Of a stretch of 64,000 nt of DNA, positions 12,214 to 62,707 are shown piece by piece. Where the stretch lies: the NCBI RefSeq assembly GCF_006345805.1, contig NC_043013.1, positions 49,724,001-49,788,000 on the forward strand, given 5' to 3'. A program made the position numbers and the translations under genes. The stretch is from Octopus sinensis (lineage: Eukaryota). The notes beneath the pieces were generated by a model. The model saw nothing but the letters and a program-made list of their open reading frames with translations. It searched no databases and had not been told where the DNA came from. The stretch's first letter is position 1; each line of letters begins with the position of its first letter.

Positions 12214-12258
<45 letters not shown>

Positions 12259-32821: not shown

Positions 32822-32854
32822 CTAATAAAAAACACAGGAAGTGGATTTTAACAA
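32822..32854 (-). CDS. Candidate terminal exon of Rheb-like gene (LLKSTSCVFY*), tentative
   Basis: Acceptor tattttatag; phase-0 reading ends in a CaaX-position Cys. Strong donor gtgagt at 32796 if the exon is read in the alternative frame. Confidence 0.3.
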   Translation of the reverse strand: MLKSTSCVFY

Positions 32855-33036
32855 CTATAAAATACTTGCAAGAGTGTGAATTTGCAGAGATATACAACCT
32901 ACACCAGCATAAAGCAATACACATAAAGATTATTTCTTTGCTGAGATAAATATATCCATGGCCTTTGCCATGGGTATGTGGGAAGCATTAGACAAAGTTT
33001 GCAAGACAATGAAACATTAGTGAAGTGTAAACTTAC

Positions 33037-33066
33037 CCGTGAGCCTTTGATATCTTTTGTAGTTAC
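33037..33066 (-). CDS. Candidate 30-nt exon (VTTKDIKGSR or NYKRYQRLT)
   Basis: Acceptor ctttctttaattttccag, donor CGG/gtaagt; open in two frames. Confidence 0.45.
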
Positions 33067-34415
33067 CTGGAAAATTAAAGAAAGCATCGAGATTACAATG
33101 GGACAAACATTGACAGTGGTGTCAACGGATTAATGGATGGAGAGATGAGGAGAAAAAGAAGGAGAGCTCTACAGGTGAAAAAGACTTTCAGGTGAGTGTC
33201 ATATCACTAAGGCAAGTTTGTTGGTGAGAAAAGATGTTAAAAGAGACAGGAAGAATTTAGTGGGAAAGATATTCTATAGCATAGAAGCCTTCATGTTAGA
33301 ATGTTTAATATTGTCCTCACTTATACAGAGGTATGGCATGTGTTTGGGGAAGAAGGGACAAAAAGGGGAAATAAGTGAAGGAAAAGATTGGGACATAACA
33401 AATGCAAATGGGAGTTAGAGTGGATGGGGTGAAGAAAGAAGGTCTGACTGAAAAAGCAAGATGATATTTTTATTTGTAATTTGGAAAGTATCAAATTTAT
33501 AGATGATGGGCAATTAAAATTTGAGACGAGATATGAAATTAATATCTTCTCAAATTACAGAATGAACCATTAGTCAAAACTAAAAACAGTAAAAGAATAA
33601 AGTTGAAGGGAAAATTATAGTAAATTTGTCAAGAATTAAGGCATTATAGAGACACGTATCTTCCACAGATCTTCAATTTCAACTCTTGTCACAGAAGCAG
33701 AAAAGACCAACTTTAAGAAAACTCTGGGATTTCTAAAACTCCTTTCTAACAAAGGAGCAAGCATTGAGAGGAAACGGGAGTTGCTTTAGTAATATAATAA
33801 AAACGAAACTGTTATACTAAAGTGCGCTTAAGTCACAGAGTTGGCCCAGCAACTAAACAGGACAAACGGTTTCTACAAAACAGGGCAAACTAAAAGATAT
33901 TTAACATTTCTGAAACAATCTTGAACTGTTTAACCTATTAATTACTATTCAATGAAAGAAAAAAAATGCTAAACATCACAAATATTATAATTAATATTCC
34001 CTTAGCAACTGAATTGTTGGAGTAGAACTGAAGATTTCTCTTCATAAAACGGTTTTAAAAAAGATGCTTTATTGAAGTGTTTCCCACTTGATTTTCTAGT
34101 ATCATGGAAGAATTAAAGCTCTACTAAATACTTATTAAATTACACAATGTTACATCTATCTAGCAAGCTATAATTCTAGTTTATAGCAAAGTATATTAGA
34201 TCAATGATGATAATGACACACCATGGATACAAGAAAATCATAGGTTGGCACTTCACTTGGCAGTGGCTCTCAGAGAATCTTAGTCCCACTTCAAAATATA
34301 TTCTTTACTGGTATTTGAAATCAATATGACTCATAATTCTTCTGGCCTTTGCAATTTCAAATATAATTGTTTTAATTGTTGTATTCACAATCATTATTAC
34401 CCGGTTCACTCTTAC

Positions 34416-34475
34416 CTTCCTTTGGACTACCAGCTTTCTTACCACCTCCCTTCTTAATCTTAGCTTGTGGTAGTT
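34416..34475 (-). CDS. Candidate 60-nt exon downstream of Rheb-like exon 7
   Basis: Acceptor tttgatctaag, donor AAG/gtaaga. Phase 0 NYHKLRLRREVVRKLVVQRK; phase 1 LPQAKIKKGGGKKAGSPKE. Confidence 0.4.
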
Positions 34476-34567
34476 CTTAGATCAAACAATGACTCCAGGT
34501 TTTAAGAAAATGGTATTGCATATGCAATAAGGAACTTTAAAGTTAAGAGAAATAAAAAAAAAATGAC

Positions 34568-34962
34568 CAGGCGCAGGCATGGCTGTGTGATAAGAAGCTT
34601 GCTACCCAACTACATGGTTCCGGGTTCAGTCCCACTGTGTGGCAACTTGGAAAAGTGTCTTCTACTATAGTCTCAGGCCAACCAAAGCCCTGTGAGATGA
34701 TTTGGTAGACAGAAACTGAAAGAAGCCCATCGTGTGTGTGTGTGTGTGTGCTTGTGTGCCTGTGTTTGCCCTCCACTACTGCTTGACAACTGATGTTTGT
34801 ATGATTTTTGTACCCGTAACTTAGCAGTTCAGCAAAAAGACACCAACAGAATAAATACTAGGCTTACAATGAATAAGTCCTGGAGTCAATTTGTTTGAGT
34901 AAAGGCAGTGCTCCAGCATGACCACAGTCAAATGACTGAAACAAGTAAAAGAATAAAAGAAT
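34568..34962 (+). mobile_element. SINE family A (diverged)
   Basis: Match to consensus. Confidence 0.85.
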
Positions 34963-35022
34963 ATGAGAGAATATTTTGATATATTGGTGAAAATAAGGAA
35001 TTAATATGGAACTGGAGATAAC

Positions 35023-35104
35023 CTCATCTGTTTTGGCAGATACTTCAAGAAAAGGAATTTCCCATTCGTCGGCAAGTTTTTTTCCGTCTTCCATTGTAAC
35101 TGCT
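35023..35104 (-). CDS. RHEB: Rheb-like small GTPase exon (equivalent to RHEB exon 7)
   Basis: tttcag/A GCA GTT...GAT GAG/gt: AVTMEDGKKLADEWEIPFLEVSAKTDE vs human VISYEEGKALAESWNAAFLESSAKENQ. 82 nt, phase 2 to 0, as in human RHEB (lengths from memory). G5 SAK present. Confidence 0.85.
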
Positions 35105-35261
35105 CTGAAATAGGGAAAAGCAGAGGATTAAAGAAGAACTTCAAAGTAACATACACTGTAATGAATCACTTTTGTGTAAACATATTGACAGAGAAGTAAA
35201 AGAAACTTCCACTCCTGCGTGTGGAAATACTGATAGAGGAACACAACAAAATATCCCTTAC

Positions 35262-37105
35262 TTCATGTGAACATGTGGGTGGAAGAGCACCAGAAACATC
35301 ACCTCCTCCATGTGATTAGGTTATTTGAGGAGTAATACAAACATCAACTCCTAGTGGAGAAGGACTAGAAACATTAACCCCTCCATGTGAATATAATGAA
35401 GGAGCACTACCAACATCATCAGTTCCACCATGTGAACATGTTGGTGGAAGAGCACCAGAAACATCACCTCCTCCATGTGAATAGGTTATTTGAGAGAGTA
35501 ATACAAACATCAACTCCTAGTGGAGAAGGACTAGAAACATTACCCCTCCATGTGAATATAATGAAGGAGCACTACCAACATCATCAGTTCACCATGTGAA
35601 CATGTTGGTGGAAGAGCACCAGAAACATCACCTCCTCCATGTGAATAGGTTATTTGAGGAGTAATACAAACATCAACTCCTAATGGAGGAGTACTAGAAA
35701 CATTAACCCCTCCATGTGAATATAATGAAGGAGCACTACCAACATCATCAGTTCCACCATGTGAACATGTTGGTGGAAGAGCACCAGAAACATCACCTCC
35801 TCCATGTGAATAGGTTATTTGAGGAGTAATACAAACATCAACTCCTAGTGGAGAAGGACTAGAAACATTAACCCCTCCATGTGAATATAATGAAGGAGCA
35901 CTACCAACATCATCAGTTCCACCATGTGAACATGTTGGTGGAAGAGCACCAGAAACATCACCTCCTCCATGTGAATAGGTTATTTGAGGAGTAATACAAA
36001 CATCAACTCCTAATGGAGGAGTACTAGAAACATTAACCCCTCCATGTGAATATAATGAAGGAGCACTACCAACATCATCAGTTCCACCATGTGAACATGT
36101 TGGTGGAAGAGCACCAGAAACATCACCTCCTCCATGTGAATAGGTTATTTGAGGAGTAATACAAACATCAACTCCTAGTGGAGAAGGACTAGAAACATTA
36201 ACCCCTCCATGTGAATATAATGAAGGAGCACTACCAACATCATCAGTTCCACCATGTGAACATGTTGGTGGAAGAGCACCAGAAACATCACCTCCTCCAT
36301 GTGAATAGGTTATTTGAGGAGTAATACAAACATCAACTCCTAGTGGAGAAGGACTAGAAACATTAACCCCTCCATGTGAATATAATGAAGGAGCACTACC
36401 AACATCATCAGTTCCACCATGTGAACATGTTGGTGGAAGAGCACCAGAACATCACCTCCTCCATGTGAATAGGTTATTTGAGGAGTAATACAAACATCAA
36501 CTCCTAGTGGAGAAGGACTAGAAACATTAACCCCTCCATGTGAATATAATGAAGGAGCACTACCAACATCATCAGTTCCACCATGTGAACATGTTGGTGG
36601 AAGAGCACCAGAAACATCACCTCCTCCATGTGAATAGGTTATTTGAGGAGTAATACAAACATCAACTCCTAGTGGAGAAGGACTAGAAACATTAACCCCT
36701 CCATGTGAATATAATGAAGGAGCACTACCAACATCATCAGTTCCACCATGTGAACATGTTGGTGGAAGAGCACCAGAAACATCACCTCCTCCATGTGAAT
36801 AGGTTATTTGAGGAGTAATACAAACATCAACCTAGTGGAGAAGGACTAGAAACATTAACCCCTCCATGTGAATATAATGAAGGAGCACTACCAACATCAT
36901 CAGTTCCACCATGTGAACATGTTGGTGGAAGAGCACCAGAAACATCACCTCCTCCATGTGAATAGGTTATTTGAGGAGTAATACAAACATCAACTCCTAG
37001 TGGAGAAGGACTAGAAACATTAACCCCTCCATGTGAATATAATGAAGGAGCACTACCAACATCATCAGTTCCACCATGTGAACATGTTGGTGGAAGAGCA
37101 CCACA
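35262..37105. repeat. 165-bp tandem repeat, ~11 copies, built from 45/45/30/45-bp subunits
   Basis: Identical marker gagaaggact at 35851 and 36181 (2x165); subunits begin CC(T/A)CCATGTGAA. Confidence 0.97.
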
Positions 37106-37111
37106 AACTTC

Positions 37112-37311
37112 TCTCTTTACTCTTTTACTTGTTTCAGTCATTTGACTGTGGCCATGCAGAAGCACCGCCTTTAGTCGAGCAAATCGACCCCAGGACTTAT
37201 TCTTTGTAAGCCCAGTACTTATTCTATCAGTCTCTTTTGCCGAACGGCTAAGTTACGGGAACATAAACACACCAGCATCGGTTGTCAAGCAATGCTAGAG
37301 GGACAAACACA

Positions 37312-37361
<50 letters not shown>

Positions 37362-37533
37362 CATATATATGACAGGCTTCTTTCAGTTTCCGTCTACCAA
37401 ATCCACTCACAAGGCTTTGGTCGGCCTGAGGCTATAGCAGAAGACACTTGCCCAAGATGCCGCGCAGTGGGACTGAACCCTGAACCATGTGGTTGGTTAG
37501 CAAGCTACTTACCACACAGCCATTCCTGCGCCT
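37112..37533 (-). mobile_element. SINE family A abutting the 165-bp array
   Basis: Reverse-complement match to consensus. Confidence 0.9.
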
Positions 37534-37842
37534 ATTTACATTACTGCGCCTTCATTTATATTATGTGAACTTGTTGCTTCAAAAAATACTAAGAATATGG
37601 AGAAAGAAAAAGATCCAGTTTGGTAAACCACATTGTAGCAGTAGTGGTAATGATTCATAAATTTGTAAATGTGAACATTGATTGTCAGCAGTAGGTGAAG
37701 TGTTGAGATAACTAAATAGCATACAACATATTTAGCAACAACAGTAAATAATGAGAGAGACTTGTTGCTTAATATGTAAAACAAACACATTGAGGTACAA
37801 CTTGAAATTATTCAAACAATATATTCAACAACATTCCTTCAC

Positions 37843-37890
37843 TGCTCTGACAACCCTAATGACCTTCCAATTAGAATTTTTGGGGATATC
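37843..37890 (-). CDS. Candidate in-frame exon 6 (6b) of Rheb-like gene
   Basis: tttatttgcag/G ATA TCC...GAG CA/gtgaag; 48 nt, phase 2-2. (W)ISPKILIGRSLGLSE(Q) vs human IPIMLVGNKKDLHME(R). Donor is weak and NKxD is absent. Confidence 0.35.
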
Positions 37891-38089
37891 CTGCAAATAA
37901 ATTTTTCCCACGGTTTAGATTTATCGTCACCATTGTTTAATATCCGTTTTCCATGCTGGAATGTGTTGGATGGGTTGACAAGAACCGATAAACCAGAAGA
38001 CTGTTCTAAGCTCCAATGTCTACCTTTGGTATGGCTTCCACAGTTAGATGCCCTTCCTAATGCCAACCACTTTACAAAGTGGTTCTCTC

Positions 38090-38478
38090 TTTTGCTCTTT
38101 CACTTGTTTCAGTCATTTGACTGCAGCCATGCTGGAGCACTGCCTTTAATCGAGCAACTCGACCCCGGGACTTATTCTTTTGTAATCCCAGTACTTATTC
38201 TATCAGTCTCTTTTGCCGAACCGCTAAGTAACGGGGACATAAACACACCAGCATCGGTTGTCAAGCAATGCTAGGGGGACAAATACAGACACACAAATAT
38301 ATACACACACACTTATATATATATATACATATATACGACAGGCTTCTTTTCAGTTTCCGTCTACCAAATCCACTCACAAGGCTTTGGTCGGCCCGAGGCT
38401 ATAGTAGAAGACACGTGTGTGGGACTGAACTCGGAACCATGAGGCTGGTAAACAAGCTAGTTACCACACAGCCACTCT
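38090..38478 (-). mobile_element. SINE family A
   Basis: Reverse-complement match. Confidence 0.9.
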
Positions 38479-38761
38479 TTTTTTCTTTTCTTTTTTTTTT
38501 TGTGGCATCAGCACTGATGAAGTCACCAAGTAACTTGTGAGACAAGATCTTTCAACTGATTGGGAGCACAGTCTTAAGATATGTGGCTTCATGCTATATC
38601 CCAGTAGAAAAGTAAGAGAGAGGATAGTGGTGATGCAATGTCAGGTCTAAAGTACAGGAAGGTGAATATAAGTGGAATAGAGGATCAGACAGGATGAGTA
38701 AGTGGCTAAGTTCAAAAGACTGTGAAAAGAAAGTAACAGATGAATAGCTATGGGGATTTAC

Positions 38762-39170
38762 AGCCACAGGAGTGGCTGTGTGGTAAGTAGCTTGCTAACC
38801 AACCACATGGTTCCGGGTTCAGTCCCACTACGTGGCATCTTGGGCAAGTGTCTTCTGCTATAGCCCCGGGCCGACCAATGCCTTGTGAGTGGATTTGGTA
38901 GACGGAAACTGAAAGAAGCCCGTCGTATATATGTATATATATGTGTGTATATGTGTGTATTTGTGTGTCTGTGTTTGTCCCCCTAGCATTGCTTGACAAC
39001 CGATGCTGGTGTGTTTACGTCCCTGTCACTTAGCGGTTCGGCAAAAGAGACCAATAGAATAAGTACTGGGCTTACAAAGAATAAGTCCCGGGGTCGATTT
39101 GCTCGACTAAAGGCGGTGCTCCGGCATGGCCACAGTCAAATGACTGAAACAAGTGAAAGAGTAAAAGAGT
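38762..39170 (+). mobile_element. SINE family A
   Basis: Full match. Confidence 0.9.
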
Positions 39171-39394
39171 ATGCGCAGATCTTGGTGGTAGTAGCAAATA
39201 AATGCTATGGAAGATGAACATGGGTGGGGGAATGTTCAGCGGTATCAGTTTTGAGTGGGGAGTGAAGGCAGGAGAAAATAGGAATTGGTTAGGTGGCAGC
39301 ACAGATGCGATGAAGTTTAAGTGGGATACAGGAGAGATGCACAGTGCTAGGGTAGATAGGGATGGAAATTATTATTTTTTTTTTTTTTACTCAA

Positions 39395-39780
39395 GGCACA
39401 AGGCTTGAAATTTTGGGGGATGGGCTAGTCGATTGGATTGACCCCAGTACATGACTGGTACTTAATTTATCGACCCCGAAAGGATGAAAGGCAAAGTCGA
39501 CCTTGACGGAATTTGAACTCAGAACGTAAAGATAGACGAAATACCTATTTCTTTATTACCCACAAGGGGCTAAACACAGAGGGGACAAACAAGGACAGAG
39601 AAAGGGATTAAGTCGATTACATCGACCCCAGTGCGTAACTGGTACTTAATTTATCAACCCCGAAAGGATGAAAGGCAAAGTCAATCTTGACGGAATTTGA
39701 ACTCAGAACGTAACTGCAGATGAAATACCGCTTAGCATTTCACCCAGCATGCTAACGATTCTGCCAGCTTGCCGCCTAAG
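39395..39780 (-). mobile_element. SINE family C, tandem dimer
   Basis: Two body units joined at the same atacctatttctttattacccac junction. Confidence 0.8.
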
Positions 39781-40259
39781 GGATGGAAATAATGATGGAC
39801 AAATGCAGTGTGAGCTGTCAATTGGAGAATAAGAGAGTGTACAAGGGAAAGGAGTGTGTGTGAAAGGGGCATTCAGTGGGAAATAATGTGATTAGGGGTG
39901 GTAATGATAATGTTTGTGATAAAAGGAAGTGGTTCTAGGGAGTGATAACTGGTAGCACAAAAGTGGAGATGAAATATGCGCAGTTCTGCTCTCATATAAT
40001 TGCATCAAGTGAGTGAATGTTCCGCCACCACATCATCTTTGGTCTGGCTGGAACTTTGTAGCAGCCACAAATTTGGTCTGTCTTCCTCAGTAGGTTGCCT
40101 TGTTGGAACTTCTAGTTATCTTCTATGTTTTACATCTCTAGCTCCCACTCCTTCTTGTCAACAGTGTTGATTAGAACTTCTCTAAATTTCTGACTGTTCA
40201 ACAGATCTTTAAATTTCCATATTATCTTTTGCCAAACTGTTTTTTTTTTACCTCTGAGT

Positions 40260-40670
40260 CCTTTTGGTACTGAGTCTGAAGATACCAACCACTAACATAA
40301 TCCAGGATTGGACTTCTACCATTTGTAAATATCTGCCTGTCCCTGTTTCTGGTGAGGCTGTAATGAATCCTATCAATCTGATATGCCTACCAGATTGAGA
40401 GATAATCAGGTGACCGGTTGGTTTCCTGAAATTGGTTCTGCACATCAACAAGTCATTAGTATCACAGAACTACAGCAGCCTTGTTCCCTCCTCATTTCTT
40501 GAACTAAAACCATACGTTTTACTGTACCCCATGAAATCCATTAGGATGCTATCCAACATGTTCGTTGAAATCAACAGCTACAATAATAAGGTCGTTGTTA
40601 TTCATGATCAAGGTAATCTGCAAAAATCCACATAAAAATGGTTCGATTGTCCATCTGCCGGTCTAGCATG
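40260..40670 (-). mobile_element. RTE LINE APE endonuclease remnant
   Basis: IVAVDFNEHVG...SRNEEGTRLL.FCDTNDLLMCRTNFRKPTGHLI.SQSG. Confidence 0.75.
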
Positions 40671-42797
40671 TGGATCATATCATCATCATCATCATCATTT
40701 AGCGTCTGTTTTCCATGCTAGCATGGGTTGGACAGTTCTACCGGGGTCTGGTAAGCTATGGAGGCTGCACCAGGCTCCAGTCTGATTTGGCAGTGTTTCT
40801 ACAGCTGGATGTACCACTCCATGAGTGTAGTGGGTGTTTTTTACGTGCCACCGGCACAGGAGCCAGCGCAGGCTGGCAAACGGCCACAATCGGTTGGTGC
40901 TTTTATGTGTCACTGACACGGACACTAGTCAGGTGGCGCTAGTAACTGCTACGGTCAAACGGTGCTCTTACGTATCACCAGCACTGGTGTCTTAACTACA
41001 ATTACCATTCGAATTTTTGATGTTGACGAACTTGACTCAACAGGTTTCCTCAAGAACAGCGGGTCACTCTACGATCCAAGGTTAGCACAGCAGAGAGAGA
41101 GATAAATGTTACTGTCATGTTTTCAACGACACACTTTGTGACTACCCTGGTCATATTATCTATCTATTTCTCTGCCAAACGTAGGTCCTCACCACCCACC
41201 ATAACTCTGCTACCTACTCAAAAGAATTTGAACCTATGTCTGTGCCTGTGAGGAGTCTAACCAAAGCTTCTCTCCATTTTTGCTATATACTATCCCCTCT
41301 CTCTCTTTCAGAGAGGCACTGAGCAGCTATACGCACGCATACACACACGGCAGTAACTTCCACCTACCGAGTTCAATCACAAAGCTTCGGTCGACTCGGG
41401 GCTATAGCGGAAGACACCTACCCAAAGTGCCACGCAGTGGGACTGAACCCGAAACCATGTAGTCGGGAAGCAAGCTTCCCAACCATACAGCCATGCCCGC
41501 GCCTACAATCACACATTTTTAGTTTCATAGTCTTGTATTCAAAAACTGGTATGGTTGTGGTTGTCCTGGTTTTTCAACATAGAGGAGTCAACACAAGTAT
41601 CAAATATAGGAAATAGTTGGTTTAATACATACGACTTTCCTCATGACACACCCTGTCTAATACCTCTTCCTCTCATGAGGCAAAATCTGGTGAATATAAG
41701 AAATGGACCAACAATTCTCAAGCAAACTCCGCTAATTTTTGTCAAGTGGCGAAAGAAACATGGGATCTACTGTTATCATCATCACCATCATCATCAACAA
41801 CATTTAACATCCATTTTCTATGCTGGCATGGGTTGGATGGCATGATAGGAGCTAGCAAGGCCAGGAGCCACACCAGGCAGAGTCCATTTTGCCTTGGTTT
41901 CTATTACTGCCCTTCCTAACACCAACCACACCCCCAGAGTGTGCTGGGTGCTTTTTACGTGGAGCCCACACTAATGCTTTTTGTGTGGCACCTTGGGTTT
42001 AGGATCTCAATTCTGTTGTGGTGGGCAGATCTTCTCAAGTACAGCAATGTGCTACATATCATAATGAAAAATAACACAGCTTCTCTTTGCTAATGCTGGA
42101 CGTTGGTATTGGACAGCAGAATCCAATTTACCCAACGTGTAAGCATTGGATCATTGTACTTGTAATTTGATTTTGTGTTAAAAACTCAAAAAACAACACA
42201 TTTATTCAACATCATTTGTTTTTGTCTTGAATGAAGACTTAATATAGGAAAAGCTAGAGTTGTTTCCCCTCGTTTACTCGTGATCTTTTTCTGTACAGTA
42301 CATATTTTTTTGATTATCAGATGGAATTTTTTTCCTTTTCTCAATAACGAAAGTGTGCTTTCTGGTTTTCCATTCTTATTATAAGTTACAAACAAAATTC
42401 TGAAAAAATTTGGTATTTCAAAACAGAGAAACCAATTCCTGCATTTATAAATGATTGTTTGGTTAATTAAAACATTACGCTTTAAATATGACAGTTGCAG
42501 CATGGAAGGTGTTTATAAGCCATTTCTGAAACACACAAAAACCGTTAGATTCACTTCAACATTTAAATTTCATTTGTCAAAATATTTTCGTCACTTTGAG
42601 ACCGTGACCTGTTCACTGACAAAGCTTTGTGCTGCATCTGATTTAAATATGTTGTTTCACATATTATGCAGGAAAAAACAAACTTCCCAGATAATTCGAT
42701 ATAATCATACAGAAGGTTAAATGTTTGGATGCACATCCACCATATCGACTATCAACAGTAAATAGAGACCAAATAAAATCCAACAAAAATAACTTAC

Positions 42798-42846
42798 ATG
42801 TCCTCTTCCAAGATCTCTTTTGCTTCGAACCATGACAATTGAAACT
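42798..42846 (-). pseudogene. Rheb-like exon 6 relic (6a), frame-disrupting
   Basis: ctgcag/A GTT TCA...GGA CAT/gtaagt: VSIVMVRSKRDLGRGH (G4-like SKRD). At 49 nt it breaks phase, and it creates TG/A stop when joined to the 57-nt exon. Confidence 0.55.
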
Positions 42847-44331
42847 CTGCAGCAATAAGATGAAATTGCTATAAAATATAACATACATAATATATCTCTA
42901 TGTATTTGTTTTGCAAGATATTGTTATACTTTAAGGATGGTCATCTTTTGTCATTCAAACACACCCACAGTTTAATCTTCACTTCAGATTTTATTCATAT
43001 TATTTGTACAGTAATATCAGCGCCAAGCAATGTTTAGGCATAAGTGAACTTTAGGTTAGTTAAAATATGTTTGTGACATATTTCAACTGCTGAAGGCAAA
43101 TACACGGCAATTACTATGGAGAAAAATGCTCTCTTACGGTAAAAAAAAATGGTGGAAAAATACTATATCTGTCTAGTGTCAGGTTCCCAGACACTGGTGT
43201 TTTGGGCTCAAATCCTAGCACAGATGTTCTTGTGCTCAGCCCCAAATGAGAGAACCTTTGATTAAAGGCATTTCACTTGTGACTATTTCAAGTATTTCCC
43301 AATTTTAAAGTACAGTGCATTGAGGACTACATTTACCAATGTGTCCTTTTCTAAGGTCATAGGGTAATTGAAAGGAGGGAGTATTTTTTGGCTGCCGTTT
43401 CTGATACATCAAATGATGGTGTAGAGGTTACCCCTAAAATAAGTGTCTTGACAACAAATGAAAACCAACAATTGTATCATTTAACATTGTCGTGTTTGAG
43501 GATGGTCATTTTGCCAATAAACACGTGCACTATTTGACTTTCACTTCAAATTATTATCATTAGTTATTGGTTATTTCATCAAAGCTCTTTCCTCACACAT
43601 TTTGTGACCTTCTCAATGACTATTTGTTGTCCTCCACTGTCTGGCCATATTTTCTTTGCTCCATCTTGTTTCTCTTACCTGCACATGCATTTGTGTCAGT
43701 ATCTGATCGTGTGTCTATGTGTTTGGTATGTGTATGTGTGTTTTGTTTAAGTGTGTGTGAGTTTGTATGCACTGTTTGTATTTGTGTTTACCTTTGTTTC
43801 GTTTTGTTTTGGTTTTTTTTTGTCTTTTTATTTTCTTCCTGAGCCCTATTCTGATTTCCGTTGTTAGGTTGTGGGGTTGAGATGTTACTATTCCATTTGT
43901 GTTTTGCTTTGAGGCTTGGTCTACCTTCTACAATGTATGTAGACTCCAAAATTTGAGTGGTGTGTCAGTCCCGTGTGTTAATATGATCTTAACAAAATAA
44001 CATAGAAGAATCTTCATAACATCAAGAATCTTGAAAAACAGATACAGAAAAGTATGATAAAAAAAAAGCACAATGAAATCATAACTTTCAATTTTCTTTA
44101 TAGAAACAAGCTCACTTTTTAGCCTTTGTCCACTCTATAATATTATATATTGAAAAATATTTCCTTTGATATATTCAGGTCATATATAAACCCATGAAAT
44201 CAAAACATCATATCAATATCTATGTTACTTGATAATTTCCAATTTCAAATCTATTACAAAGTAGGGCCAGATATTTATCTAGAATTCAGTAGTAAAAATG
44301 GAATTGTAGGAAAATAGAAACTTTTATAGCA

Positions 44332-44550
44332 TTAACCCTTTCATTACTGTATTTATTTTGAGATGCTCTGTGTTTCTCTCAATTACTTTAAATATAACAA
44401 AGAATTTAGTAAAATAACTTGGTTATCATTAAGCTAGTGTTGGGAACATAAATTGTGACTAAGGTTTGGTGGAAGATTTAAATTCAAAACAAGACATTTG
44501 TATTACGGAACCAGAGCCGGTTTCAGCCGGGTTGGTAACGAAAGGGTTAA
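44332..44550. mobile_element. piggyBac-type MITE (second family)
   Basis: ttaaccctttcattac...gtaacgaaagggttaa. Confidence 0.8.
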
Positions 44551-44557
44551 TACTTAC

Positions 44558-44614
44558 CATATTTTGCCTTTCATGTCACTTATCTTGTTGTAAATCAATT
44601 TGATAATATCAAGG
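44558..44614 (-). CDS. RHEB: Rheb-like small GTPase exon (equivalent to RHEB exon 5)
   Basis: cttcacag/C CTT GAT...ATA TG/gtaagt: LDIIKLIYNKISDMKGKI vs human FEVIKVIHGKLLDMVGKV; 57 nt, phase 2-2. Confidence 0.8.
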
Positions 44615-44835
44615 CTGTGAAGAAGACAAAAAGGATTATTATAAATTAACGAAACTGAAAATGTACAAAGGCTAACAATGTGCAAAATGAGTTAAATGCT
44701 TGCTATGCTAAGTGATTCGTTTAACTAGAGAGTAAAATACAAAATCCCATTGTTATTTGTCATAATATATTTATTTGTTTAGAAATATTGAATTTCTAAA
44801 TGACTCAGAGAGACATGAGCAGTGGTGGAGCGATA

Positions 44836-45212
44836 GAGTGGATGTATAAAGTCAACTTAACATGACAGTCTCATAAAGGGAATCACACCACCACTATTTA
44901 GCCCTAGGAAGCATCGATGCTTCTTGTCGGCTTTGACACATTTCCTGTGTCCTTATATATTTACGAAGGGGAAACAAGCACCCCCACCAGCTAGGCCTGC
45001 ATCCAGAGACATGCATGTTTCTGAGTTTTGCTCATCATCAGTCTGGAGTAGCATGGGCTGCTGTAGGGAGTGCTTGTCTCCCCTTCGCAAATATAAGGAC
45101 ACAGGAAATGTGTCAAAGCCGACAGGAAGCGTCGATGCTTCCTAGGGCTAAACAGCGGCGGTGTAATTCCCTTACGGGACTGTCACGTTATGTTGACAGT
45201 ATACAACCACTC
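44836..45212. mobile_element. Foldback element with ~155-bp inverted arms
   Basis: 44836-44990 is the imperfect reverse complement of 45060-45212. Confidence 0.88.
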
Positions 45213-45369
45213 CATTTATTTGTTTAAAATTCTATAATTCTCTCCAACTCTTAATTTCTAGTAGAGTGTGTATAAAGGGAGCTAAGTCAGTCCAAACTTG
45301 ATCAACTCTCTTCCATAACATGAAGTGCAGTGGTGTATTAAATACTGGAGACAGAAGAAGGTATATTAC

Positions 45370-45452
45370 AGGGGAGATGTTAATAACAGAGTCATATATA
45401 TGAAACCAATTGTTTCATTTTTCTTTACTCCTCTATGATGAAAAACCAGTTT
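45370..45452 (-). CDS. Candidate exon 4 of Rheb-like gene
   Basis: tttttgttcag/AAA CTG...CCC CT/gtaata; 83 nt, phase 0 to 2. KLVFHHRGVKKNETIGFIYMTLLLTSP has GFI in register with human GYI; similarity otherwise weak. Confidence 0.4.
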
Positions 45453-45584
45453 CTGAACAAAAAACCTATAAAAGACTACCAAATTAAAAACGTATGGTAT
45501 GTACCAGATGAAATTAATTAGTAAACAATATGAGATGTCGGCGTCATAATCAGTTTGTAAGGATTGGTTTTTTTGGGGGGTGTT

Positions 45585-45865
45585 CTTTTTTACTTGTCTC
45601 AATCATTAGACTGTGGCCATGCTGGAGCACCGCCTTTAGTCGAGCAAATTGACCCCGGGACTTATTCTTTGTAAGCCTAGTACTTATTCTATCGGTCTCT
45701 TTTGCCGAACCGCTATGTTACGGGGACATAAACACACCAACATTGGTTGTCAAGTGATGTTGGGGGCACAAACACAGACACACAAACATATACACACACA
45801 CATATATACGACAGGCTTCTTTGTTTCCGTCTACCAAATCCACTCACAAGGCTTTGGTCGGCCTG
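45585..45865 (-). mobile_element. SINE family A, 5'-truncated
   Basis: Reverse-complement match. Confidence 0.85.
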
Positions 45866-46105
45866 ATTTTTTTATGCGAATTCATGTATTGAAACAAATT
45901 TTGTTGTCTAGAGAGAGTCATTATACCAATATAATTAACACACACACTGGTTCAATCCCATTCCTTTATTATTAGTTAATTAGTTAAATATCCAACTAAC
46001 TAATTTGTTTTGTTTTTGTATGACAAAGTCCTTTCATTGCGACTTGCAACCTTTTCAATGACTATTAGTCTGTTATAGAGGCCACGTTTGTTTGAGATTT
46101 GTTAC

Positions 46106-46505
46106 AGGCGCAGGAGTGGCTGTGTGGTAAGTAGCTTGTCTACCAACCACATGGTTTCGGGTTCAGTCCCACTGCGTGGCATCTTGGGCAAGTGTCTTCT
46201 ACTATAGCTTCAGGCCGACCAAAGCCTTGTGAGTGGATTTGGTAGACGGAAACTGAAAGAAGCCCGTCGTATGTATGTATATATATATATATATATGCGT
46301 GTGTGTGTTTGTGTGTCTGTGTTTGTCCCCCTAGCATTGCTTGACAACCGATGCTGGTGTGTTTATGTCCCCGTTACTTAGCGGTTCGGCAAAAGAGACC
46401 GATAGAATAAGTACTGGGCTCACAAAAGAATAAGTCCCGGAGGTCGAGTTGCTCGATTAAAGGCGGTACTCCAGCATGGTCGCAGTCAAATGACTGAAAC
46501 TAATA
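46106..46505 (+). mobile_element. SINE family A
   Basis: Full match. Confidence 0.9.
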
Positions 46506-47124
46506 AAGGTGTAAAGTGTAAAAGTGTATGTGTGTGTGTGTGCCAGCATGCACATGTGCTTGTGTCTTTACATCATCATCATTTAGCGTCCGTTTTCCAT
46601 GTTTAACTGGGGTCTGTGAAGCCGGAAGGCTTCATCAGGCCCAGTCAGATTTGGCAGTGTTTCTACGGCTGGATGCCCTTCCTAACGCCAGGTACGTACG
46701 TATGTATTCTGCATATTCATGTACTTGTGCTTGTGTGTATATCTCTGCTTCTATGTGTATGTGTTTCAGTGTGTCCATGCATGAGTTTATGTGAGTATGC
46801 ACACATGCCTGTTACATATGCACGTGTACCTTTGTACCTTTTTGAGTATGCGTGTATATATGGTCACGTTTTTCTGTTTCCTTATGTGTGTGTATATGCT
46901 TGTCTGTCTGTATTACCTATGTACCTACTTACCTATATATCTATCAACCTACCTACCTACTTATTTATCTACCCATTAGTTTGCCTATCCTCCTACCTAC
47001 ATAATTAAATGACTAACAATCTATATAACTGACCTAACCACCTAAAACCTATCTACCTACCTACTTGACTGCCAACTTACAAATGTACCTATGTATGTAT
47101 ACCTTGTGGCGTTAGTGTATCTCT

Positions 47125-47600
47125 ACTTTCTACATGTATTTCCTATTTAGTGCAGGTGATGTTTCATTTATGAGGACATACCCTTGTATTTCTCTAAGTG
47201 TCAGGTCCTTTGAGCGCTTGGACAAAATGCGAATGTCAATTCGGCCCAGTGTACCCCCATGTTGATAGAGTATGGAGGACTGTTTCTTGTCATTATATTC
47301 TCTCCAATACACATCTAGTTTCTCTACTATACTCCTAGAGGTCTCACCATCCTATGTTATGTTTCTGACCATACAGACTCCTTCAATGCACCTTATGCAG
47401 TAGACTACGTTTCTAGTTTTACAGTTAATACCAGAGTTAATCCAAATACTATACAGTTCTCATTAGTGCATATTTTCAAAGGAGTACATCCTACATAACT
47501 GTGATCTGATGAAGCTCCCTGTCTTCTCAATGATCTTAATATTGAGTTTGGTGGCCTTCAGAGCCAGTTGAGTAGCTGAGTACAGAGTGGAATATGAAAT
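47125..47600 (-). mobile_element. Penelope-like endonuclease/C-terminal remnant
   Basis: RNVVYCIRC-like segment followed by YWREYNDKKQSSILYQH...LINETSPALNRK. Confidence 0.55.
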
Positions 47601-47689
47601 TAAATAAATGACAAAGGAACACAAAATTATATAATGTACAGCTGTTTCTATGATAAGATGTAGTGTTTTTGTTAGATGGACACATTGGC

Positions 47690-49975
47690 AATTGGGCACC
47701 CACTTCCATCCAGATAGCAATAAAACAAGACAGCTCCAATTCCAATGTTGGATGCATCACAAGCCAGTCCAAGAGGCTTGTCTGGGTCAAAATGTACAAG
47801 GACTTGATCTGAGGATAATAAGCTTTTCAACTGTTTAAACACTCTTTGCTACTCATCTCTCCACTTCTAAGGAGTTGCCTTCTTGGTTAAACAGTAAAGT
47901 GGCTCGGCCATAGTGGCCAGGTTTGGGATAAACTTCTTGTAGAACTGAACTACACCCAAGAAAGACTTTAAGCTTGAGACGTCTATAGGGAGTAGCATCT
48001 TCATGACTGCCTCAAATTTGGATCCCTTCGTGATTCCTTCTGGTGATATTCCACACTGGTTTGTGCAAACAAGCACTTTTCACAGCAACATCTGAGTCCT
48101 TTGTCATTCAGAGAAGAAAGCAAACGCCTCGGGTTGCTTAAGAGGTGATTTGCATCTTTCCCGCTGATGAGCATATCGTCTTGGAATACAGCAACTGCAG
48201 GTAGATTACTGGAAGTAACCAGGCACCAATTTGATTCTAAATGGGAGTCATTGCTGCAGGAGTCATTACAAAGTGAGTGCTGAGGGCTAGCCTTCATTGA
48301 CTCTCTGGTGCCAGTTTGATCTGGTTGTAGGCATCAGCAAGGTCAATTTTTGTATAACTACATGCACCTCCCAGCTTCTGCATCAGTTCCTCTGGGAGCG
48401 GCATTGGATGACGGTGTACTTCTAGTTGATTGTTGATACCAACTGAGTAGTCACCACAAACTCGTAACTTGGACTTCAGAGTGCCCAGATTATGTGCTTT
48501 GCGAATCGGTACCACTGGCATTCAGAATTCATTGAACTGGACTTGCTGCTAGACTCCTTTTGCGATACCTTCTTCATAACCTTTGGTCAGGTCAGCACGA
48601 AGAGCAAATGGAACTGGTTGTGCCTTGTGAAAAACCAGCTTTACATCAGACTTCAATTTTACTTCCAGTTTGAAATCCTCAAGACACCCCAATTCTTCTT
48701 TGAAAAGATCTGGAAACTCATCACAATGTCGTTTCAGGGAAGCATAAGGCTCATTAGAGGATTTAGGATGTGATGGTTCTGCACCCTTACTCTTGTCTTG
48801 ACTCTCTATGCACTTCAGTCCCAGAGTAGTGTCTATAGAAATTCCTAGTGTCTGAATAACATTTCATCCCAGCAAGTTCAAGGATCTTGGTGACAATGTA
48901 AGAAATACTGTTTTGTTTACCAGTCACTGGATCCTTGGTTTCAATCATGAAAGTTCCCAGCATGGGCAAGTCATACTTGCTGGCAGACTCATAGTGATAT
49001 CTGACATCATCCAGCTTCGGTTTCCTAACTCAGGGTCTGTAGAATTAGACTGCTAGTGGTTTATTCATTGACCCTTGTTCTGGGTTTGCTTGACCTTATT
49101 GACAGACCTGGTCTTCAAATCGTAGACAGTTTCATTGGCAACGTTTGCTGTGTCTTCGGTCTCAGTTGCATCTTGGACAGCATTGGCAAAGTCCAGCTCT
49201 GTGTCCTTGATCTTAAAAAGAGTCTTTAAGATAGCTTTATTGTTGACAACATATGAATCTCTACCTAAGAGCTTCATCTTGAGGGTCTGTGATAGAAGGA
49301 AAGTCACAGATAGCAGCATCTTGTTGTACATGCGCTGCCAGTTCCTGGAGAGTTTTGCCTGGCTTCTGTTGCATGTCACACCAGAACTTGAAATTGCCTC
49401 CATCGTTAGCTCATTAATATCCTTTGGCGGACTCTGTTGAATGGCCAGATTCACCAGTCATTTATAAACAGCAACGGTTTGATTTGTCACAAAAATTTGA
49501 GCCTTGCACTGGTCAGGCATAGCATTTGACCAGTAATCAGGCCACAATTCAGATGCTGAGTCGAAAGCAACAAATGATGGGACAGCAGTAGAAGATGGAA
49601 TATGGGGACTTGGACTAGAATCTTTTTCAGAAATTTGAACTTGAATCAGCCTTCTCAAACCTTCCATATCTCCTCCGTGCTGCTGCGTCTGCACCTCCAT
49701 TTGTTCTCTCTCACCGTTTTGTTTCGCCATTGTTATCAATGTAAAAATAGTTAAAATATTGTTTTATCTAGAATGGAGTTTATGTGCAAATCTGGTTGTT
49801 TACCTTTCAAATAACTATATCTGTATGTCGAGGTAAAAAGTCCACTCCACAAGAATAGTCTTTCATATCCTATCATAAGAAGTCCACTTCAAAAAAATGA
49901 TGACAGTATCTTATCAGCAACACCAATTTGTTATATTTCTCTTGTTTACTTACAAAGAATAAAGTAATAATACAG
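47690..49975 (-). mobile_element. Decayed Gypsy LTR retrotransposon (gag-PR-RT-RNaseH)
   Basis: LRVCGDYSVGINNQL...YTKIDLADAYNQI; FQDDMLISG; LKSFLGVVQFYKKFIPNLAT.AEPLY.L; LGLACDASNIGIGAVL; gag-like SELWPDYWS. Confidence 0.9.
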
Positions 49976-50265
49976 ACAGGTGTGTTGTCTGTGGCTCAGA
50001 CGCCGTGGTGATCTCATTCTTGCTCACAACATCATAAGCGGAAAGTGTAACCTCTCGAAAGAGCTGTTCTTCACTCCTGCTCCAGAGCGTAGGCTGCGGG
50101 GGTCACTCCGAAAAGCTCTATCTGCAACGATTTCATCTCAATCGAAGGAAAGGGGGCTTTCTCCGTCCAGGTTGCGGATCCGTGGAATAAGCTGCCGGAC
50201 GAGATAGTGAGGATGCCGACGACCGCTCGGTTCAAAGTCTCTCTTGACCAGAAATGGCCTGAACT
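49975..50265 (+). mobile_element. CR1-clade LINE 3' fragment
   Basis: RRRGDLILAHNIISG...LRGHSEKL...AFSVRVADPWNKLPDEIV. Confidence 0.85.
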
Positions 50266-50348
50266 CTTTGTACGAACACCCCTGTACATAACTCCATGCC
50301 CCGCTACATGGCCTTGCTTTCTGAGCCAAAAAATTAATTTAACTTACT

Positions 50349-50423
50349 TAACTTCTCTCGTTTACTTGCAAAGAAGAAAACACAGTGGTCCTCCAGATAG
50401 GTGTGAAGTCTGTTTATTCCAGC
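50349..50423 (-). CDS. Candidate upstream exon (exon 2-like) of the minus-strand gene, tentative
   Basis: ttttacag/CT GGA ATA...TTA A/gtaagt; 75 nt, phase 1-1; (A)GINRLHTYLEDHCVFFFASKREKL. Strong splice sites but little similarity to Rheb. Confidence 0.3.
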
Positions 50424-50734
50424 TGTAAAACTCAAGACTGTAATAATGTAAACAAAAATCGAAATGCCTTGTGAATGTTCTCATGAGTCCCAGAACTTTG
50501 AATTCTGTTGGCTAGCAACCTCCATAACAGTTTTCAGAGCTGCTGAGTGCTTGTGCATGAACTTAGAGATTCCTTTGAGGAAGCATGATACTGTATGTTC
50601 GCTAGATCCAGTCGGTGGGGAATTGAACCTTTGTCCCATTTTGCTATTGTTTATGCAATGCATAAGCTGCTCTAAATTAGCAGAGTTGGCGTAGGACACC
50701 TTCACTGTGTGCCAATTAAAAATGGCATGATACT

Positions 50735-51119
50735 CTTTTACTTGTTTCAGTCAACTGACTGCAGCCATGCTGGAGCACCGCCTTTAATCGAGCAACTCGA
50801 CCCCGGGACTTATTCTTTTGTAAGCCCAGTACTTATTCTATCGGTGTCTTTTGCCGAACCACTAAGTAACGGGGACATAAACACGCCAGCATCAGTTGTC
50901 AAGCAATGCTAGGGGAACAAACACAGACACACAAACACACATATATACATATATACGACGGGCTTCTTTCAGTTTCTGTCCATAAAATCCACTCAGAAGG
51001 CATTGGTCGGCATGAGGCTATAGTAGAAGACACTTGCCCAAGGTGCCACGCAGTGGGACTGGACCCGGAACCATGTGGTTGGTAGACAAGCTACTTACCA
51101 CACAGCCACTCCTGCGCCT
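50735..51119 (-). mobile_element. SINE family A
   Basis: Reverse-complement match. Confidence 0.9.
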
Positions 51120-51329
51120 GATTAGATTTAAGAAAACATTTGTCCAAAGCAGGAAAATATTTTCTAGCAATCCTGGTTGAAACATGCAAACCGAAAATCA
51201 GGTTGAACCAGAGGAGATCCTGATTCCTATATCAGCTGTTAGGCTTATTTGATTGTGTTGAACAGGATTGGATTAAGCCGTTGGATTACTATGTCCCATG
51301 TGTCTGAGTTTTCGTTGGTAGTTCATTGA

Positions 51330-51575
51330 CAGGACCTATTCTTCCTGGTCCGTATTCCCTATCTGAGTGATGGTGTACAATGTGTATTACAACTGGAGGA
51401 ATTACCAGTGTTGTGTACGCTTGTTTCTTGTATATATTGAATTTTTTCACAGTTCCCAGGCCTAGCTAGAGCAGCATTATAATAAGTTGCATGTAATTTG
51501 AAAATGTTATTATTAGAGGATAATCTAGAAATTCTTGTAGAAATATTCTGAGCTAATCTCCATATTATCAAGGGT
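51330..51575 (-). mobile_element. Penelope-like RT C-terminal fragment
   Basis: NISTRISRLSSNNNIFKLHATYYNAAL...EKIQY. Confidence 0.65.
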
Positions 51576-51774
51576 GGATGCTATATACTATATTAATGTA
51601 CTAAATATGAAATGGTTCAAATAATCCAGTATAAAGACAGAAGGTAGCGTCAAGAAAATTCACTCCGTGAGGGATCAATTAAACTGCCTGATGTGTCGAA
51701 ACAACTGTTATGGTTAATAATAAATTCTCGTATATTCCATCTTCCATTTGCCATATATATATATATATATATAT

Positions 51775-52107
51775 ACTCTTTTACTCTTTTACTTGTTTCA
51801 GTCATTTAACTGCGGCCATGCTGGAGCACCGCCTTTAATCGGGACTTATTCTTTGTAAGCCCAATACTTATTCTATCGGTCTCTTTTGCAGGGGACAAAT
51901 ACAGACACACAAACACACACACGCATATATATATATATACATATATACGACGGACTTCTTTCAGTTTCAGTCTACCAAATCCACTCACAAGGCTTTGGTC
52001 GGCCCGAGGCTATAGTAGAAGACACTTGCCCAAGGTGCCACGCAGTGGGACCGAACCCGGAGCCATGTGGTTGGTAGACAAGCTACTTACCACACAGCCA
52101 CTCCTGC

Positions 52108-52110
<3 letters not shown>
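51775..52110 (-). mobile_element. SINE family A with internal deletions
   Basis: Reverse-complement match. Confidence 0.85.
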
Positions 52111-52172
<62 letters not shown>

Positions 52173-52651
52173 CAGGGTGTTTGGACTAAATTTGATTGTA
52201 CATAAAAGGAAAAGAAAACAGTATGCCTTCCAAAAATAATATATTTAAAAAAATCAAAATATATCAACTAATTTGTGGCTGGGAGATAACAGTTTACTTG
52301 AAGTGGATTCAGAAAAAGAAAGTTTAAGGATAGAAAGTGAAGGAAAGGGTCTGGATAGTGTACTTTGCGATGATGGTTCAATGAATCGAGGTGTATAACT
52401 TTAGGGACAGAGAGAGGGCAGTGATGTTATATGCAAAGAAACAAAATATTTATTTAACTCTGTAGGGAAGAAATAAGGAGGTCTATAACAAGGTGGAAGA
52501 AGGAGAGAAATTGGTAATCGTTAAGTGCTAAGACAACTCTAAATAGTGTACTTCATGTAAGTTCAAAAAAATCGAAATATATACGTAACTTTAAGAATGT
52601 TCAGAGAGAGAAAGTAATTGCAAATTGACATGCAAATTCCAAACCAATTTC

Positions 52652-53069
52652 GGATCTTTTCAGTTTGAACGGCAGTTTTCAACATAATTTCTAGGTAACT
52701 AAAAAATTTTAAACTTCGTATACTGGTAGAATGTGTTTATAAAACATCTTTTTCTCTTGGCTTTATTGAGAAAATTCTATGGTTTGTAAGATATTTGCTG
52801 TTGTTTTTTCTTCAATTTCTGCAATTTCAACCAATCAATGACGTCCATTGAGGTAAAAAAAAAACATTCTGTGCCGTATGAATATGTCCCTCGTTTAAGA
52901 AACAGATTGGGTTTATTTACATTTGTGAAGAAAAAAAAAAGATACCCTTCCCCCACCCCTAACCCTAAAACAGATTGAAATGCAATAGATCGATTCTAGG
53001 GTCATAATTATGGGTGACAGTTTCATATGACACCGCTAGAAAAAACTGCCGTTCAAACCGAAAAGATCC
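52652..53069. mobile_element. 8-bp-TSD MITE, copy 3
   Basis: Same TIRs; TSD ccaatttc/caaatttc (1 mismatch). Confidence 0.9.
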
Positions 53070-53867
53070 CAAATTTCTCTTACCTATCAAATATTTTTGT
53101 TTAATTTTCGGAGCTGTCAATTTGCAATTACGGAAAGACTTCCGTCCGTCCCCACTACCCAAATTTGTTTATTTTATTATTATTTTTTTTTACCAAAATT
53201 TCCCGTTTTCGGATACGGAGGTTTCGTAAAATTGCCAAAAATCGGCATTGTGAAATTCCACCCACCCACCACAACTTATTCAATTTTGACTTGTTTCCCT
53301 AACACTAAACCCTAACCCTAAAACACTAACCGTAAGTACAGAAATGTTTTGAAATTTTCATCCGAATCATAATGTCCGTATTTTTCCGCATATTTTGAAA
53401 AAAAAAAAAATTCTTTAAAAATTCTGAAAAAAGTGAAAAAAAGGAAGGAAATGGGGATGGGGTGGTGATAATTTAGAAATGTCGATTTTTGCCATTTTTT
53501 TTTTTTTTTTCAGATTCGTATTCCCCGTGGCCGAAAAGTGTGTGGGGGGATTCGAAATACGATGCACTCTTCATAAATTAATGCTCTTGGGAAATTAAAA
53601 CAAATAAATCACTTATAATGATCTTTTAACAACTATTTTTAAGCATTAAGTTGCTCGTTTCGCTACTGTAGTCTTATTTTTGTACATTCCCAGTAACATT
53701 TTTTAATTTCACTTTTAATCCCATTCTTACAATATTCCCTAAAATGAAAAATCGCTAAGTTTAGCTGGTGAAAGCGATTAGGCATGTTTCGATTTTGTTA
53801 TATTTCAGTTGGCAAGACCAAGATAATAATCAGTAATATAAAGGAAAGTAGTCACAGAACAAAGTCG

Positions 53868-54171
53868 GGTACTACTAGCGAACAGTGGTCCCGGTGTGCG
53901 CCCTCGCGTACCCGTGCCAGCTAGTCATAACTAGTCGATCCTTTGTGTTTTTGAGTTATTTACTTTGTTTAAAAAATTATTTACTTTGTGTTTTTGTGTT
54001 TTATTTACTTTGTTTAACAAAAGTTATTTAATTTGTGTAAAAAAATTATTTATTTTGTGTTTTATTTACTTTGCTAAGTAGTCGTTGTGGGATCGACTAC
54101 TTACGACTAGCTAGCTCGGATGCGCGACTGCGCGTGTGCGCGCACCGGGACCACTTTTCGCTAGTAGTACC
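53868..54171. mobile_element. MITE with GGTACTACTAGCGAA termini and 8-bp TSD
   Basis: ~35-bp TIRs; caaagtcg at 53860-53867 and 54172-54179; AT-rich internal subrepeats. Confidence 0.9.
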
Positions 54172-54282
54172 CAAAGTCGCTGAAAGAAATTACGTTAGGG
54201 GAATATTTTGTCTACTAAATAATAACACATATACTACAATCTCAGTAAACTTATCCTTGGCAAATCAAAAGATAAAACTCAC

Positions 54283-54370
54283 CGTAGGAGTATCCACTCA
54301 TCCAAATTTTGGTAAATAAGGACAATGCAGTTTGAAGTGGATCTTGTGTTTGAAGCTTTCTGGTGAAAAC
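54283..54370 (-). CDS. Candidate first exon of the minus-strand gene, tentative
   Basis: Strong donor TACG/gtgagt; frame ...FTKIWMSGYSY loosely like RHEB KIAILGYRSV. Upstream end interrupted by a SINE. Confidence 0.25.
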
Positions 54371-54589
54371 GGCCTGCCGTTACGTTCTGGGTTCAAATTC
54401 CGCCGAGGTCGACTTTGCCTTTCATCCTTTCGGGGTCGATTAAATAAGTAACTGTTACGCACTGGGGTTCGATTAAATAGGTACCAGTTACGCACTGGAG
54501 TCGATGTAATCGGCTTAATCCCTTTGTCTGACCTTGTTTGTCCCCTTGTGGGTAGTAGAGAAATAGATATTTTTTCCATCTCGAACTCC

Positions 54590-54962: not shown

Positions 54963-54964
54963 TC

Positions 54965-58945: not shown

Positions 58946-58994
<49 letters not shown>

Positions 58995-62676: not shown

Positions 62677-62707
<31 letters not shown>

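Follow-up and report, generated by a model that had tools for sequence, protein, structure and literature searches.

What is the Rheb-like sequence that lies upstream of ATG12 in the genome of Octopus sinensis: a gene, or what is left of one? The sequence falls within a 64 kb stretch of CM016875.1 (assembly GCA_006345805.1), referred to here as the window, whose coordinates are converted to those of the record by adding 49,724,000. Rheb, the Ras homologue enriched in brain, is the small GTPase that activates mTORC1, and an initial annotation of the window had proposed that four short segments of the minus strand are exons 4-7 of a divergent Rheb paralogue, either a pseudogene or a pseudo-GTPase. 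Our analysis shows that three of these segments, corresponding to exons 5, 6 and 7, are derived from Rheb. The locus is most likely the relic of a truncated Rheb duplicate, i.e. an unprocessed pseudogene fragment, an explanation to which we would assign a probability of about 0.6.

Three exons of Rheb origin

The four segments, of 83, 57, 48 and 82 nt, exist as described, with AG and GT at their borders and the open frame that was quoted for them (Table 1). As a reference for gene structure we have used rheb of Salvelinus fontinalis (L005), mapped exon by exon, the spliced product of which equals P0042. Its coding exons are 52, 72, 68, 83, 57, 48, 82 and 93 nt in length, and exons 4-7 start in phases 0, 2, 2 and 2. 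All four octopus segments match exons 4-7 in order, length and phase, as had been claimed, but the homology of the 83 nt segment to exon 4 is at the level of chance (see below). For the 57, 48 and 82 nt segments the correspondence with exons 5-7 is exact in both respects, each starting in phase 2. None of the four overlaps any repeat in the window.

Table 1. Rheb-like exons, neighbouring gene and principal repeats of the window. Positions are window coordinates; a slash marks an exon-intron boundary. SINE, short interspersed nuclear element; LTR, long terminal repeat.
Feature	Position	Strand	Description
Rheb exon 7-like	35023..35104	-	82 nt, plus 2 nt supplied by the preceding exon; encodes (Q)AVTMEDGKKLADEWEIPFLEVSAKTDE; G5 SAK motif
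Rheb exon 6-like	37843..37890	-	48 nt; encodes (W)ISPKILIGRSLGLSE(Q); beta5 strand kept, RSLG at the NKxD (G4) position
Rheb exon 5-like	44558..44614	-	57 nt; encodes (L)LDIIKLIYNKISDMKGKI(W); acceptor ttcttcaCAG, donor ATG/GTAAGT
Candidate exon 4	45370..45452	-	83 nt, KLVFHHRGVKKNETIGFIYMTLLLTSP; length, phase and splice dinucleotides right; homology undemonstrable
ATG12 exons 1-3	55397-55511, 56218-56354, 58414-58476	+	When spliced, translates to residues 1-105 of P0165, the ATG12 of O. vulgaris/O. sinensis
Minisatellite, 165 bp x 11.2	35264..37108		Tandem Repeats Finder; 98% identity among copies; fills much of the exon 6/exon 7 intron
SINE-like repeat copy	34561..34970		Self-BLAST; begins ~50 nt 3' of the exon 7-like segment
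Broken reverse-transcriptase fragments (LTR-retrotransposon type)	48004..48521	-	Pfam RVT_1 E 0.005-0.0075, two adjacent frames, below the gathering score

How far does the resemblance exceed what the window would provide by chance? Each segment was compared with every open segment of equal length and phase bounded by AG and GT on both strands of the window. The exon 7-like segment (acceptor ctattTCAG, donor GAG/GTTATC) gives an in-register score of 83 against Rheb, the next best of the set scoring 2 (n = 142), and that of exon 5 scores 49, with the next best at 5 (n = 172). Exon 6 is less straightforward. It requires one internal insertion and one deletion to align with Rheb, yet its gapped score of 31 is the best of 212 same-shaped segments, the next being 22, and was reached by only 7 of 1500 shuffled introns (p ~0.005). 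A second, in-phase donor is available to this exon after 27 nt (AAG/GTCATT). Using tblastn with a sequence of human RHEB that is 99% identical to P0001, the exon 7-like segment is found with E 1.6e-4 (45% identity) and that of exon 5 with E 0.12 (43% identity). The exon 5-like segment is also the sole significant match to a Rheb hidden Markov model (HMM) on the minus strand between 44.5 and 55.4 kb (E 0.0027, compared with 1.9 for the next). On the strength of these comparisons we take the segments of exons 5, 6 and 7 to be derived from Rheb, and regard exon 4 as unproven.

The spliced product points to the same parent. The 90 amino acid peptide formed by the 83 nt segment and exons 5-7 has Rheb as its best match in the PDB by phmmer (E 5e-9, 39.4 bits), followed by Rap2A (E 1.4e-5, ~28 bits) and RhebL1 (E 3e-5, ~27 bits). 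If exons 5-7 alone are used the order is unchanged, with Rheb at E 1.3e-8 (37.8 bits), Rap2A at 4e-5 (~27 bits) and RhebL1 at 6e-5 (26.3 bits); the 83 nt segment adds only ~1.5 bits to the match. Other Ras families fall at least 10 bits below Rheb for the spliced peptide in this search, and Pfam places the peptide in the Ras family with E 5e-6. The comparisons support derivation of the octopus sequence from Rheb, as opposed to another gene of the Ras family. The recognizable part comprises alpha3-beta5-alpha4-beta6 of the G domain, roughly residues 92-154 of 184. Within it the alpha3 signature (IK.I..K..DM.GK), the beta5 strand, the E-G..LA..W and F.E elements and the SAK of G5 are kept.

Two of the five G motifs fall within these exons, and they have fared differently, as the initial annotation had stated. 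G5 is present in the exon 7-like segment as FLEVSAKT. G4 is lost; the exon 6-like segment reads PKILIG-RSLG-LSE where Rhebs carry P.(I/V)LVG-NKxD-L, and no alternative exon with an NKxD motif, or more generally [NT][KQ]xD, was found in the 9.4 kb intron. Use of the 27 nt donor would remove the whole G4 loop, so that G4 is lost under either mode of splicing.

Is the peptide known elsewhere? A full HMMER scan of 1.84 billion representative proteins revealed no orthologue. The best true matches were ordinary Rhebs with 38-41% identity; the nominal top match (P0121) is a low-complexity artefact, and P0122 is a protist multi-Ras protein. No protein sharing three 5-mers with the peptide of exons 5-7 was found in 5.8 billion clusters, a search of metagenome DNA for sequence encoding the exon 7 peptide gave 0 matches, and the exact products of three open reading frames (ORFs) of the window, including the read-through from exon 7, have no entry in protein records. 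A search of the literature on Rheb in Octopus, or on Rheb as a pseudo-GTPase, found nothing relevant.

The remainder of the gene

Rheb exons 1-4 and 8 were sought by tblastn, by two Rheb HMMs applied to six-frame fragments, by regular expressions for the motifs and by scans for segments of the right exon shape. The search extended beyond the window by means of a further O. sinensis locus of CM016875.1 (L002), which matches window positions 45397-64000 at 100% over 18,604 nt and runs to ~74 kb in window terms. Orthologous loci were reached via ATG12. That of O. vulgaris (L001) begins near window position 45525 and that of O. bimaculoides is non-collinear; the Rheb-like exons fall outside these two loci and that of Argonauta.

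The exons that would encode the N-terminal half of the G domain were not found. The motif scan of the window revealed no GxxxxGK[ST], no YxPT[IL] and no credible DxxG on the minus strand upstream of the exon 5-like segment, and between 44.6 and 64 kb on that strand there is neither a G1, G2 or G3 motif nor a match to the Rheb HMM. Using tblastn no further Rheb exons were detected in L002 as far as ~74 kb, so that at least 29 kb upstream of the exon 5-like segment contains no exon for G1-G3. The absence of an exon 3 with its DTAG (G3) sequence, which had been noted initially, was borne out by both motif and HMM scans, and no 68 nt segment of the shape of exon 3 gives a plausible match. The region from 45.5 to 52 kb, where Rheb exons 1-3 would lie, is filled by broken reverse-transcriptase fragments and SINE copies, in agreement with the retroelement debris originally reported there.

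The candidate for exon 4 has the correct architecture and little else. Its in-register score of -13 ranks 28th of 118 same-shaped segments, and is reached by 75% of shuffles of the upstream interval, or 9% if only the C-terminal half is scored.

The P-loop that had been proposed, GYSYAGIN, was assembled from two pieces, and neither stands. The first is a candidate exon 1 at 54283..54301 on the minus strand, ATG AGT GGA TAC TCC TAC G/GTGAGT, encoding MSGYSY; the second begins at an acceptor at position 50422 and continues downward as AG/CTGGAATAAAC. The latter was the candidate exon 2 (50347..50422, minus strand; AGINRLHTYLEDH). It has the wrong length, as there is no GT 72 nt past the acceptor (Rheb exon 2 is 72 nt), and does not resemble residues 18-41 of Rheb; a 72 nt segment that overlaps it ranks 83rd of 126. 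O. vulgaris has the candidate exon 1 site unchanged, but in O. bimaculoides a 46 bp insertion after ATGAGCGG brings in an in-frame TAA, and we reject the site as coding sequence. The site lies ~1.1 kb upstream of the ATG12 start codon, within a conserved block (54288-54375) that keeps the GTGAGT motif. Since several other blocks upstream of ATG12 are equally conserved (see below), the conservation of this one needs no coding explanation. A further candidate, VGQVQRSAIFVGNKRPFH at 60292-60345, is a different frame of an ORF that by eye resembles the tail of a retroelement reverse transcriptase, without a Pfam match; it is also out of order, and we regard it as chance.

At the other end of the gene, no phase 0 exon that resembles alpha5 or ends in a CAAX stop was found downstream of the exon 7-like segment within the window, the best candidates being at the level of chance. 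VDVFERVIFE (9992-10021) tops 1006 phase 0 candidates by a single point, lacks a CAAX and lies near a mariner helix-turn-helix sequence; we consider it fortuitous. Reading through from the exon 7-like segment leads into the adjacent SINE-like copy, with a stop at 34864.

Genomic setting

The Rheb-like exons are arranged head-to-head with ATG12, which bounds the space available to any 5' exons of Rheb. The last exon of ATG12 (CYGSDGKLVLHYCKTAAWG) lies just past the end of the window. The octopus protein is 95% identical to that of O. bimaculoides and 83% to that of Argonauta hians. L002 carries both ATG12 and a gene of WD40 repeats, and octopus, oyster and chiton (L002, L006 and L007) share this pair in its tail-to-tail arrangement. 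No Ras-family gene lies within 10 kb of ATG12 in Argonauta, oyster or chiton, which makes the position of the Rheb-like exons a derived one; an ancestral linkage of Rheb and ATG12 is unsupported in oyster or chiton. The upstream neighbours of ATG12 are Snf7 and PIG-X in oyster, and a sacsin-like gene of 2870 amino acids in Argonauta, while none is called in Octopus. The O. sinensis annotation is devoid of protein-coding genes from 45.4 to 55.4 kb.

Upstream of ATG12, at 53200-55220 (8340-10000 of L003), there are several blocks of 50-90 nt in which O. sinensis and O. bimaculoides share at least 94% identity, in surroundings that align at ~83-86% with large insertions and deletions. These are probably promoter or regulatory elements of ATG12.

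Repeats occupy much of the locus. The minisatellite has a minus-strand open frame of 303 amino acids that is rich in glycine, serine and proline and has no Pfam match. The repeat is open on this strand because 165 bp is exactly 55 codons, and the frame is probably incidental to a young repeat. The SINE-like repeat is represented by 16 copies in the window by self-BLAST, with up to 67 matches to the family within the window. A tandem array at 29152-30440, of seven 184 bp units with 96% identity, is apparently made up of this scattered SINE-like sequence and would be a SINE-derived satellite. An integrase core fragment (rve, E 1e-5) is found at 6225-6572 on the plus strand, and a Mos1-type mariner sequence (HTH_48, E 2e-13) at 10374-10553 on the minus strand; among the debris found in the window we saw no intact transposable element. 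A (GATA)84 microsatellite at 11945-12276 generates long spurious ORFs on the minus strand, such as that at 11722-12324. The O. vulgaris annotation includes a single-exon gene of 80 amino acids (L001 4083-4325, minus strand, equivalent to ~49461-49700 on the minus strand of the window), which has no Pfam match and sits among broken retroelement ORFs; its counterpart in O. sinensis differs at several residues and is uncalled. Neither the Rfam scan nor the tRNA scan of the window gave a match.

Discussion

The exons that are present and those that are absent together define what the locus could make. It cannot encode a GTPase, because over the sequence available no exon supplies the P-loop, switch I, switch II/G3 or the CAAX tail, and the NKxD sequence is replaced. 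Only about one third of the G domain is encoded, and half a domain is unlikely to form a stable protein. In its best match, and in the identity of intron positions, phases and lengths across exons 5-7, the octopus copy resembles Rheb; it differs in its divergence, in the RSLG substitution, in the exons that the locus lacks and in being unannotated. It can also be compared with vertebrate RhebL1, another paralogue of the Rheb family that arose by DNA-level duplication. RhebL1 retains all five G motifs together with the CAAX box. The octopus peptide is nearer to Rheb than to RhebL1 by more than ten bits, and thus the duplication is an independent, lineage-specific one. Pseudo-GTPases offer a different comparison. 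The octopus sequence shares with them the loss of the nucleotide-specificity motif from a G domain. However, known examples such as CENP-M and the pseudo-GTPase domains of p190RhoGAP keep the complete fold, whereas here there is only a C-terminal part, equivalent to residues 92-154 of Rheb, and beta1-beta3 and alpha1 were not found. The initial annotation also suggested that the product might compete at the interface of TSC and mTORC1. It is established from the structures of Rheb with mTORC1, and from work on Rheb and TSC2, that Rheb contacts mTOR and TSC2 through switch I and switch II, encoded by exons 2-4. In the octopus locus these are missing or unconserved, and such competition has no basis in the sequence.

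These properties are largely those of an unprocessed pseudogene. The octopus copy is homologous to a functional gene and has retained introns; it lacks essential exons (1-3 and 8), occupies a non-ancestral place, has received insertions of transposons and a minisatellite, and does not appear in the proteomes. Since the introns sit at ancestral Rheb positions, the copy is a duplicate made at the level of DNA and not a retrocopy. We envisage that a partial duplication of the Rheb gene placed a copy upstream of ATG12 in O. sinensis. Rheb is near-universal in animals, and a parental copy is hence to be expected in this species. The copy may have been under selection as coding sequence during most of its existence, losing its 5' part fairly recently, and is probably non-functional today, a relic embedded in insertions of SINEs, retrotransposons and a minisatellite. 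Of the two possibilities offered at the outset, the pseudogene is therefore the better explanation; the N-terminal half that a pseudo-GTPase would need has neither statistical nor comparative support.

One aspect of the locus fits this explanation poorly, and a number of observations bear on it. The peptide of exons 5-7 is only 37-46% identical to any Rheb, and yet the exons are free of stops and frameshifts, the six splice dinucleotides are all preserved, and there are good polypyrimidine tracts at the exon 5-like and exon 7-like segments. Preservation of this kind at high divergence is atypical of a long-dead copy. We simulated neutral decay on real Rheb exons 5-7, with the divergence set to leave 58-65% of ancestral residues. 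The probability of finding no stop and all 12 splice nucleotides intact was 2-3%, that of finding no insertion or deletion was 1-2% at an assumed indel-to-substitution ratio of 0.1, and the joint probability was ~1e-3 to 1e-4. As neutral decay would rarely keep frames and splice sites at ~60% divergence, most of the divergence should have occurred under coding constraint. The distribution of changes agrees with this. A set of 13 diverse Rheb-like proteins has 24 columns that are conserved in at least 84% of them, and the octopus peptide keeps the residue at 16 of these. Among the columns lost are all of the N, K and D of G4, where the non-conservative changes are concentrated. The pattern of kept and lost columns looks more like selection on an altered protein than random decay. 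Moreover, the absence of the peptide from annotations is weak evidence that it is not made. All of this weighs against a simple relic, and leaves two possibilities: either the exons belong to an old, divergent paralogue that was truncated recently, or they are still used in an unannotated transcript.

Might the locus then be a living gene? In such a case an unannotated, fast-evolving Rheb-like gene would draw its N-terminal part from diverged or novel exons, perhaps including 45370-45452, and having lost G4 would act independently of nucleotide. The intact frames and splice sites, the exact exon lengths and the improbability of purely neutral decay all favour this, as does the retention of fold-determining residues where NKxD is specifically replaced. 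The 83 nt segment could contribute, having the right length, phase and AG/GT borders and a weak in-register resemblance (GFIYM compared with GYILVY). Against this, that segment is at chance level, there is no N-terminal homology in the at least 29 kb upstream, the candidate exon 1 is broken in O. bimaculoides and no terminal exon was found within the window. The third of a G domain that can be recognized would be unlikely to fold alone. Finally, the peptide occurs in no gene model or predicted protein of four octopod annotations, the protein collections scanned including the proteomes of O. vulgaris, O. sinensis, O. bimaculoides and Argonauta. We consider a living gene unlikely. A more specific form, an octopod-specific Rheb-derived gene for a pseudo-GTPase-like or adaptor protein, long under selection and unannotated, in which guanine-nucleotide specificity has gone with NKxD and unrelated exons have replaced the N-terminal half, is less probable again.

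Transcription without a functional protein is an alternative we hold to be about as improbable as that specific form. A transcribed pseudogene or non-coding transcript would run divergently from the region upstream of ATG12, and the head-to-head arrangement, the intact splice sites of exons 5-7 and the conserved GTGAGT donor in the non-coding blocks at 54.28-54.38 kb are all consistent with it. Yet the ATG12 promoter region contains several blocks like the conserved one, which requires no transcript to account for it, and non-coding use would leave the reading frames unprotected.

An ordinary Rheb gene with overlooked exons is very improbable, despite the Rheb exon structure of exons 5-7. The identity is ~40%, compared with 73-100% to human RHEB among the vertebrate Rhebs returned in our searches, NKxD is absent without an alternative exon, and the space upstream is taken by ATG12 and the WD40 gene. 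Missed exons that would restore intact G1-G5 were looked for in the window and in L002 without success, in agreement with the initial view that this is not a conventional Rheb. That the similarity arose by chance, in AT-rich DNA of introns or between genes, can be dismissed, for although exon 5 alone is weak by tblastn and exon 6 alone was missed by the HMM search, there are three collinear matches on one strand, in the right order and with exact Rheb lengths, phases and AG/GT borders, the combined E value against the PDB is 1e-8 and the null tests agree.

A selected cephalopod protein that is derived from Rheb and does not bind guanine nucleotides would, if it exists, be of real interest for the biology of mTORC1. 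If, as we think most likely, the locus is a relic of a truncated Rheb duplicate, then it is a routine matter for annotation, and Octopus genomes should label it a pseudogene fragment lest homology-based gene finders build chimeric models from it. A relic of this kind would also provide octopod genomics with a dated marker, both for segmental duplication and for invasion by transposons. What sets it apart is the integrity of frames and splice sites at ~60% divergence, and this makes the octopus locus a cheap and well-defined test case.

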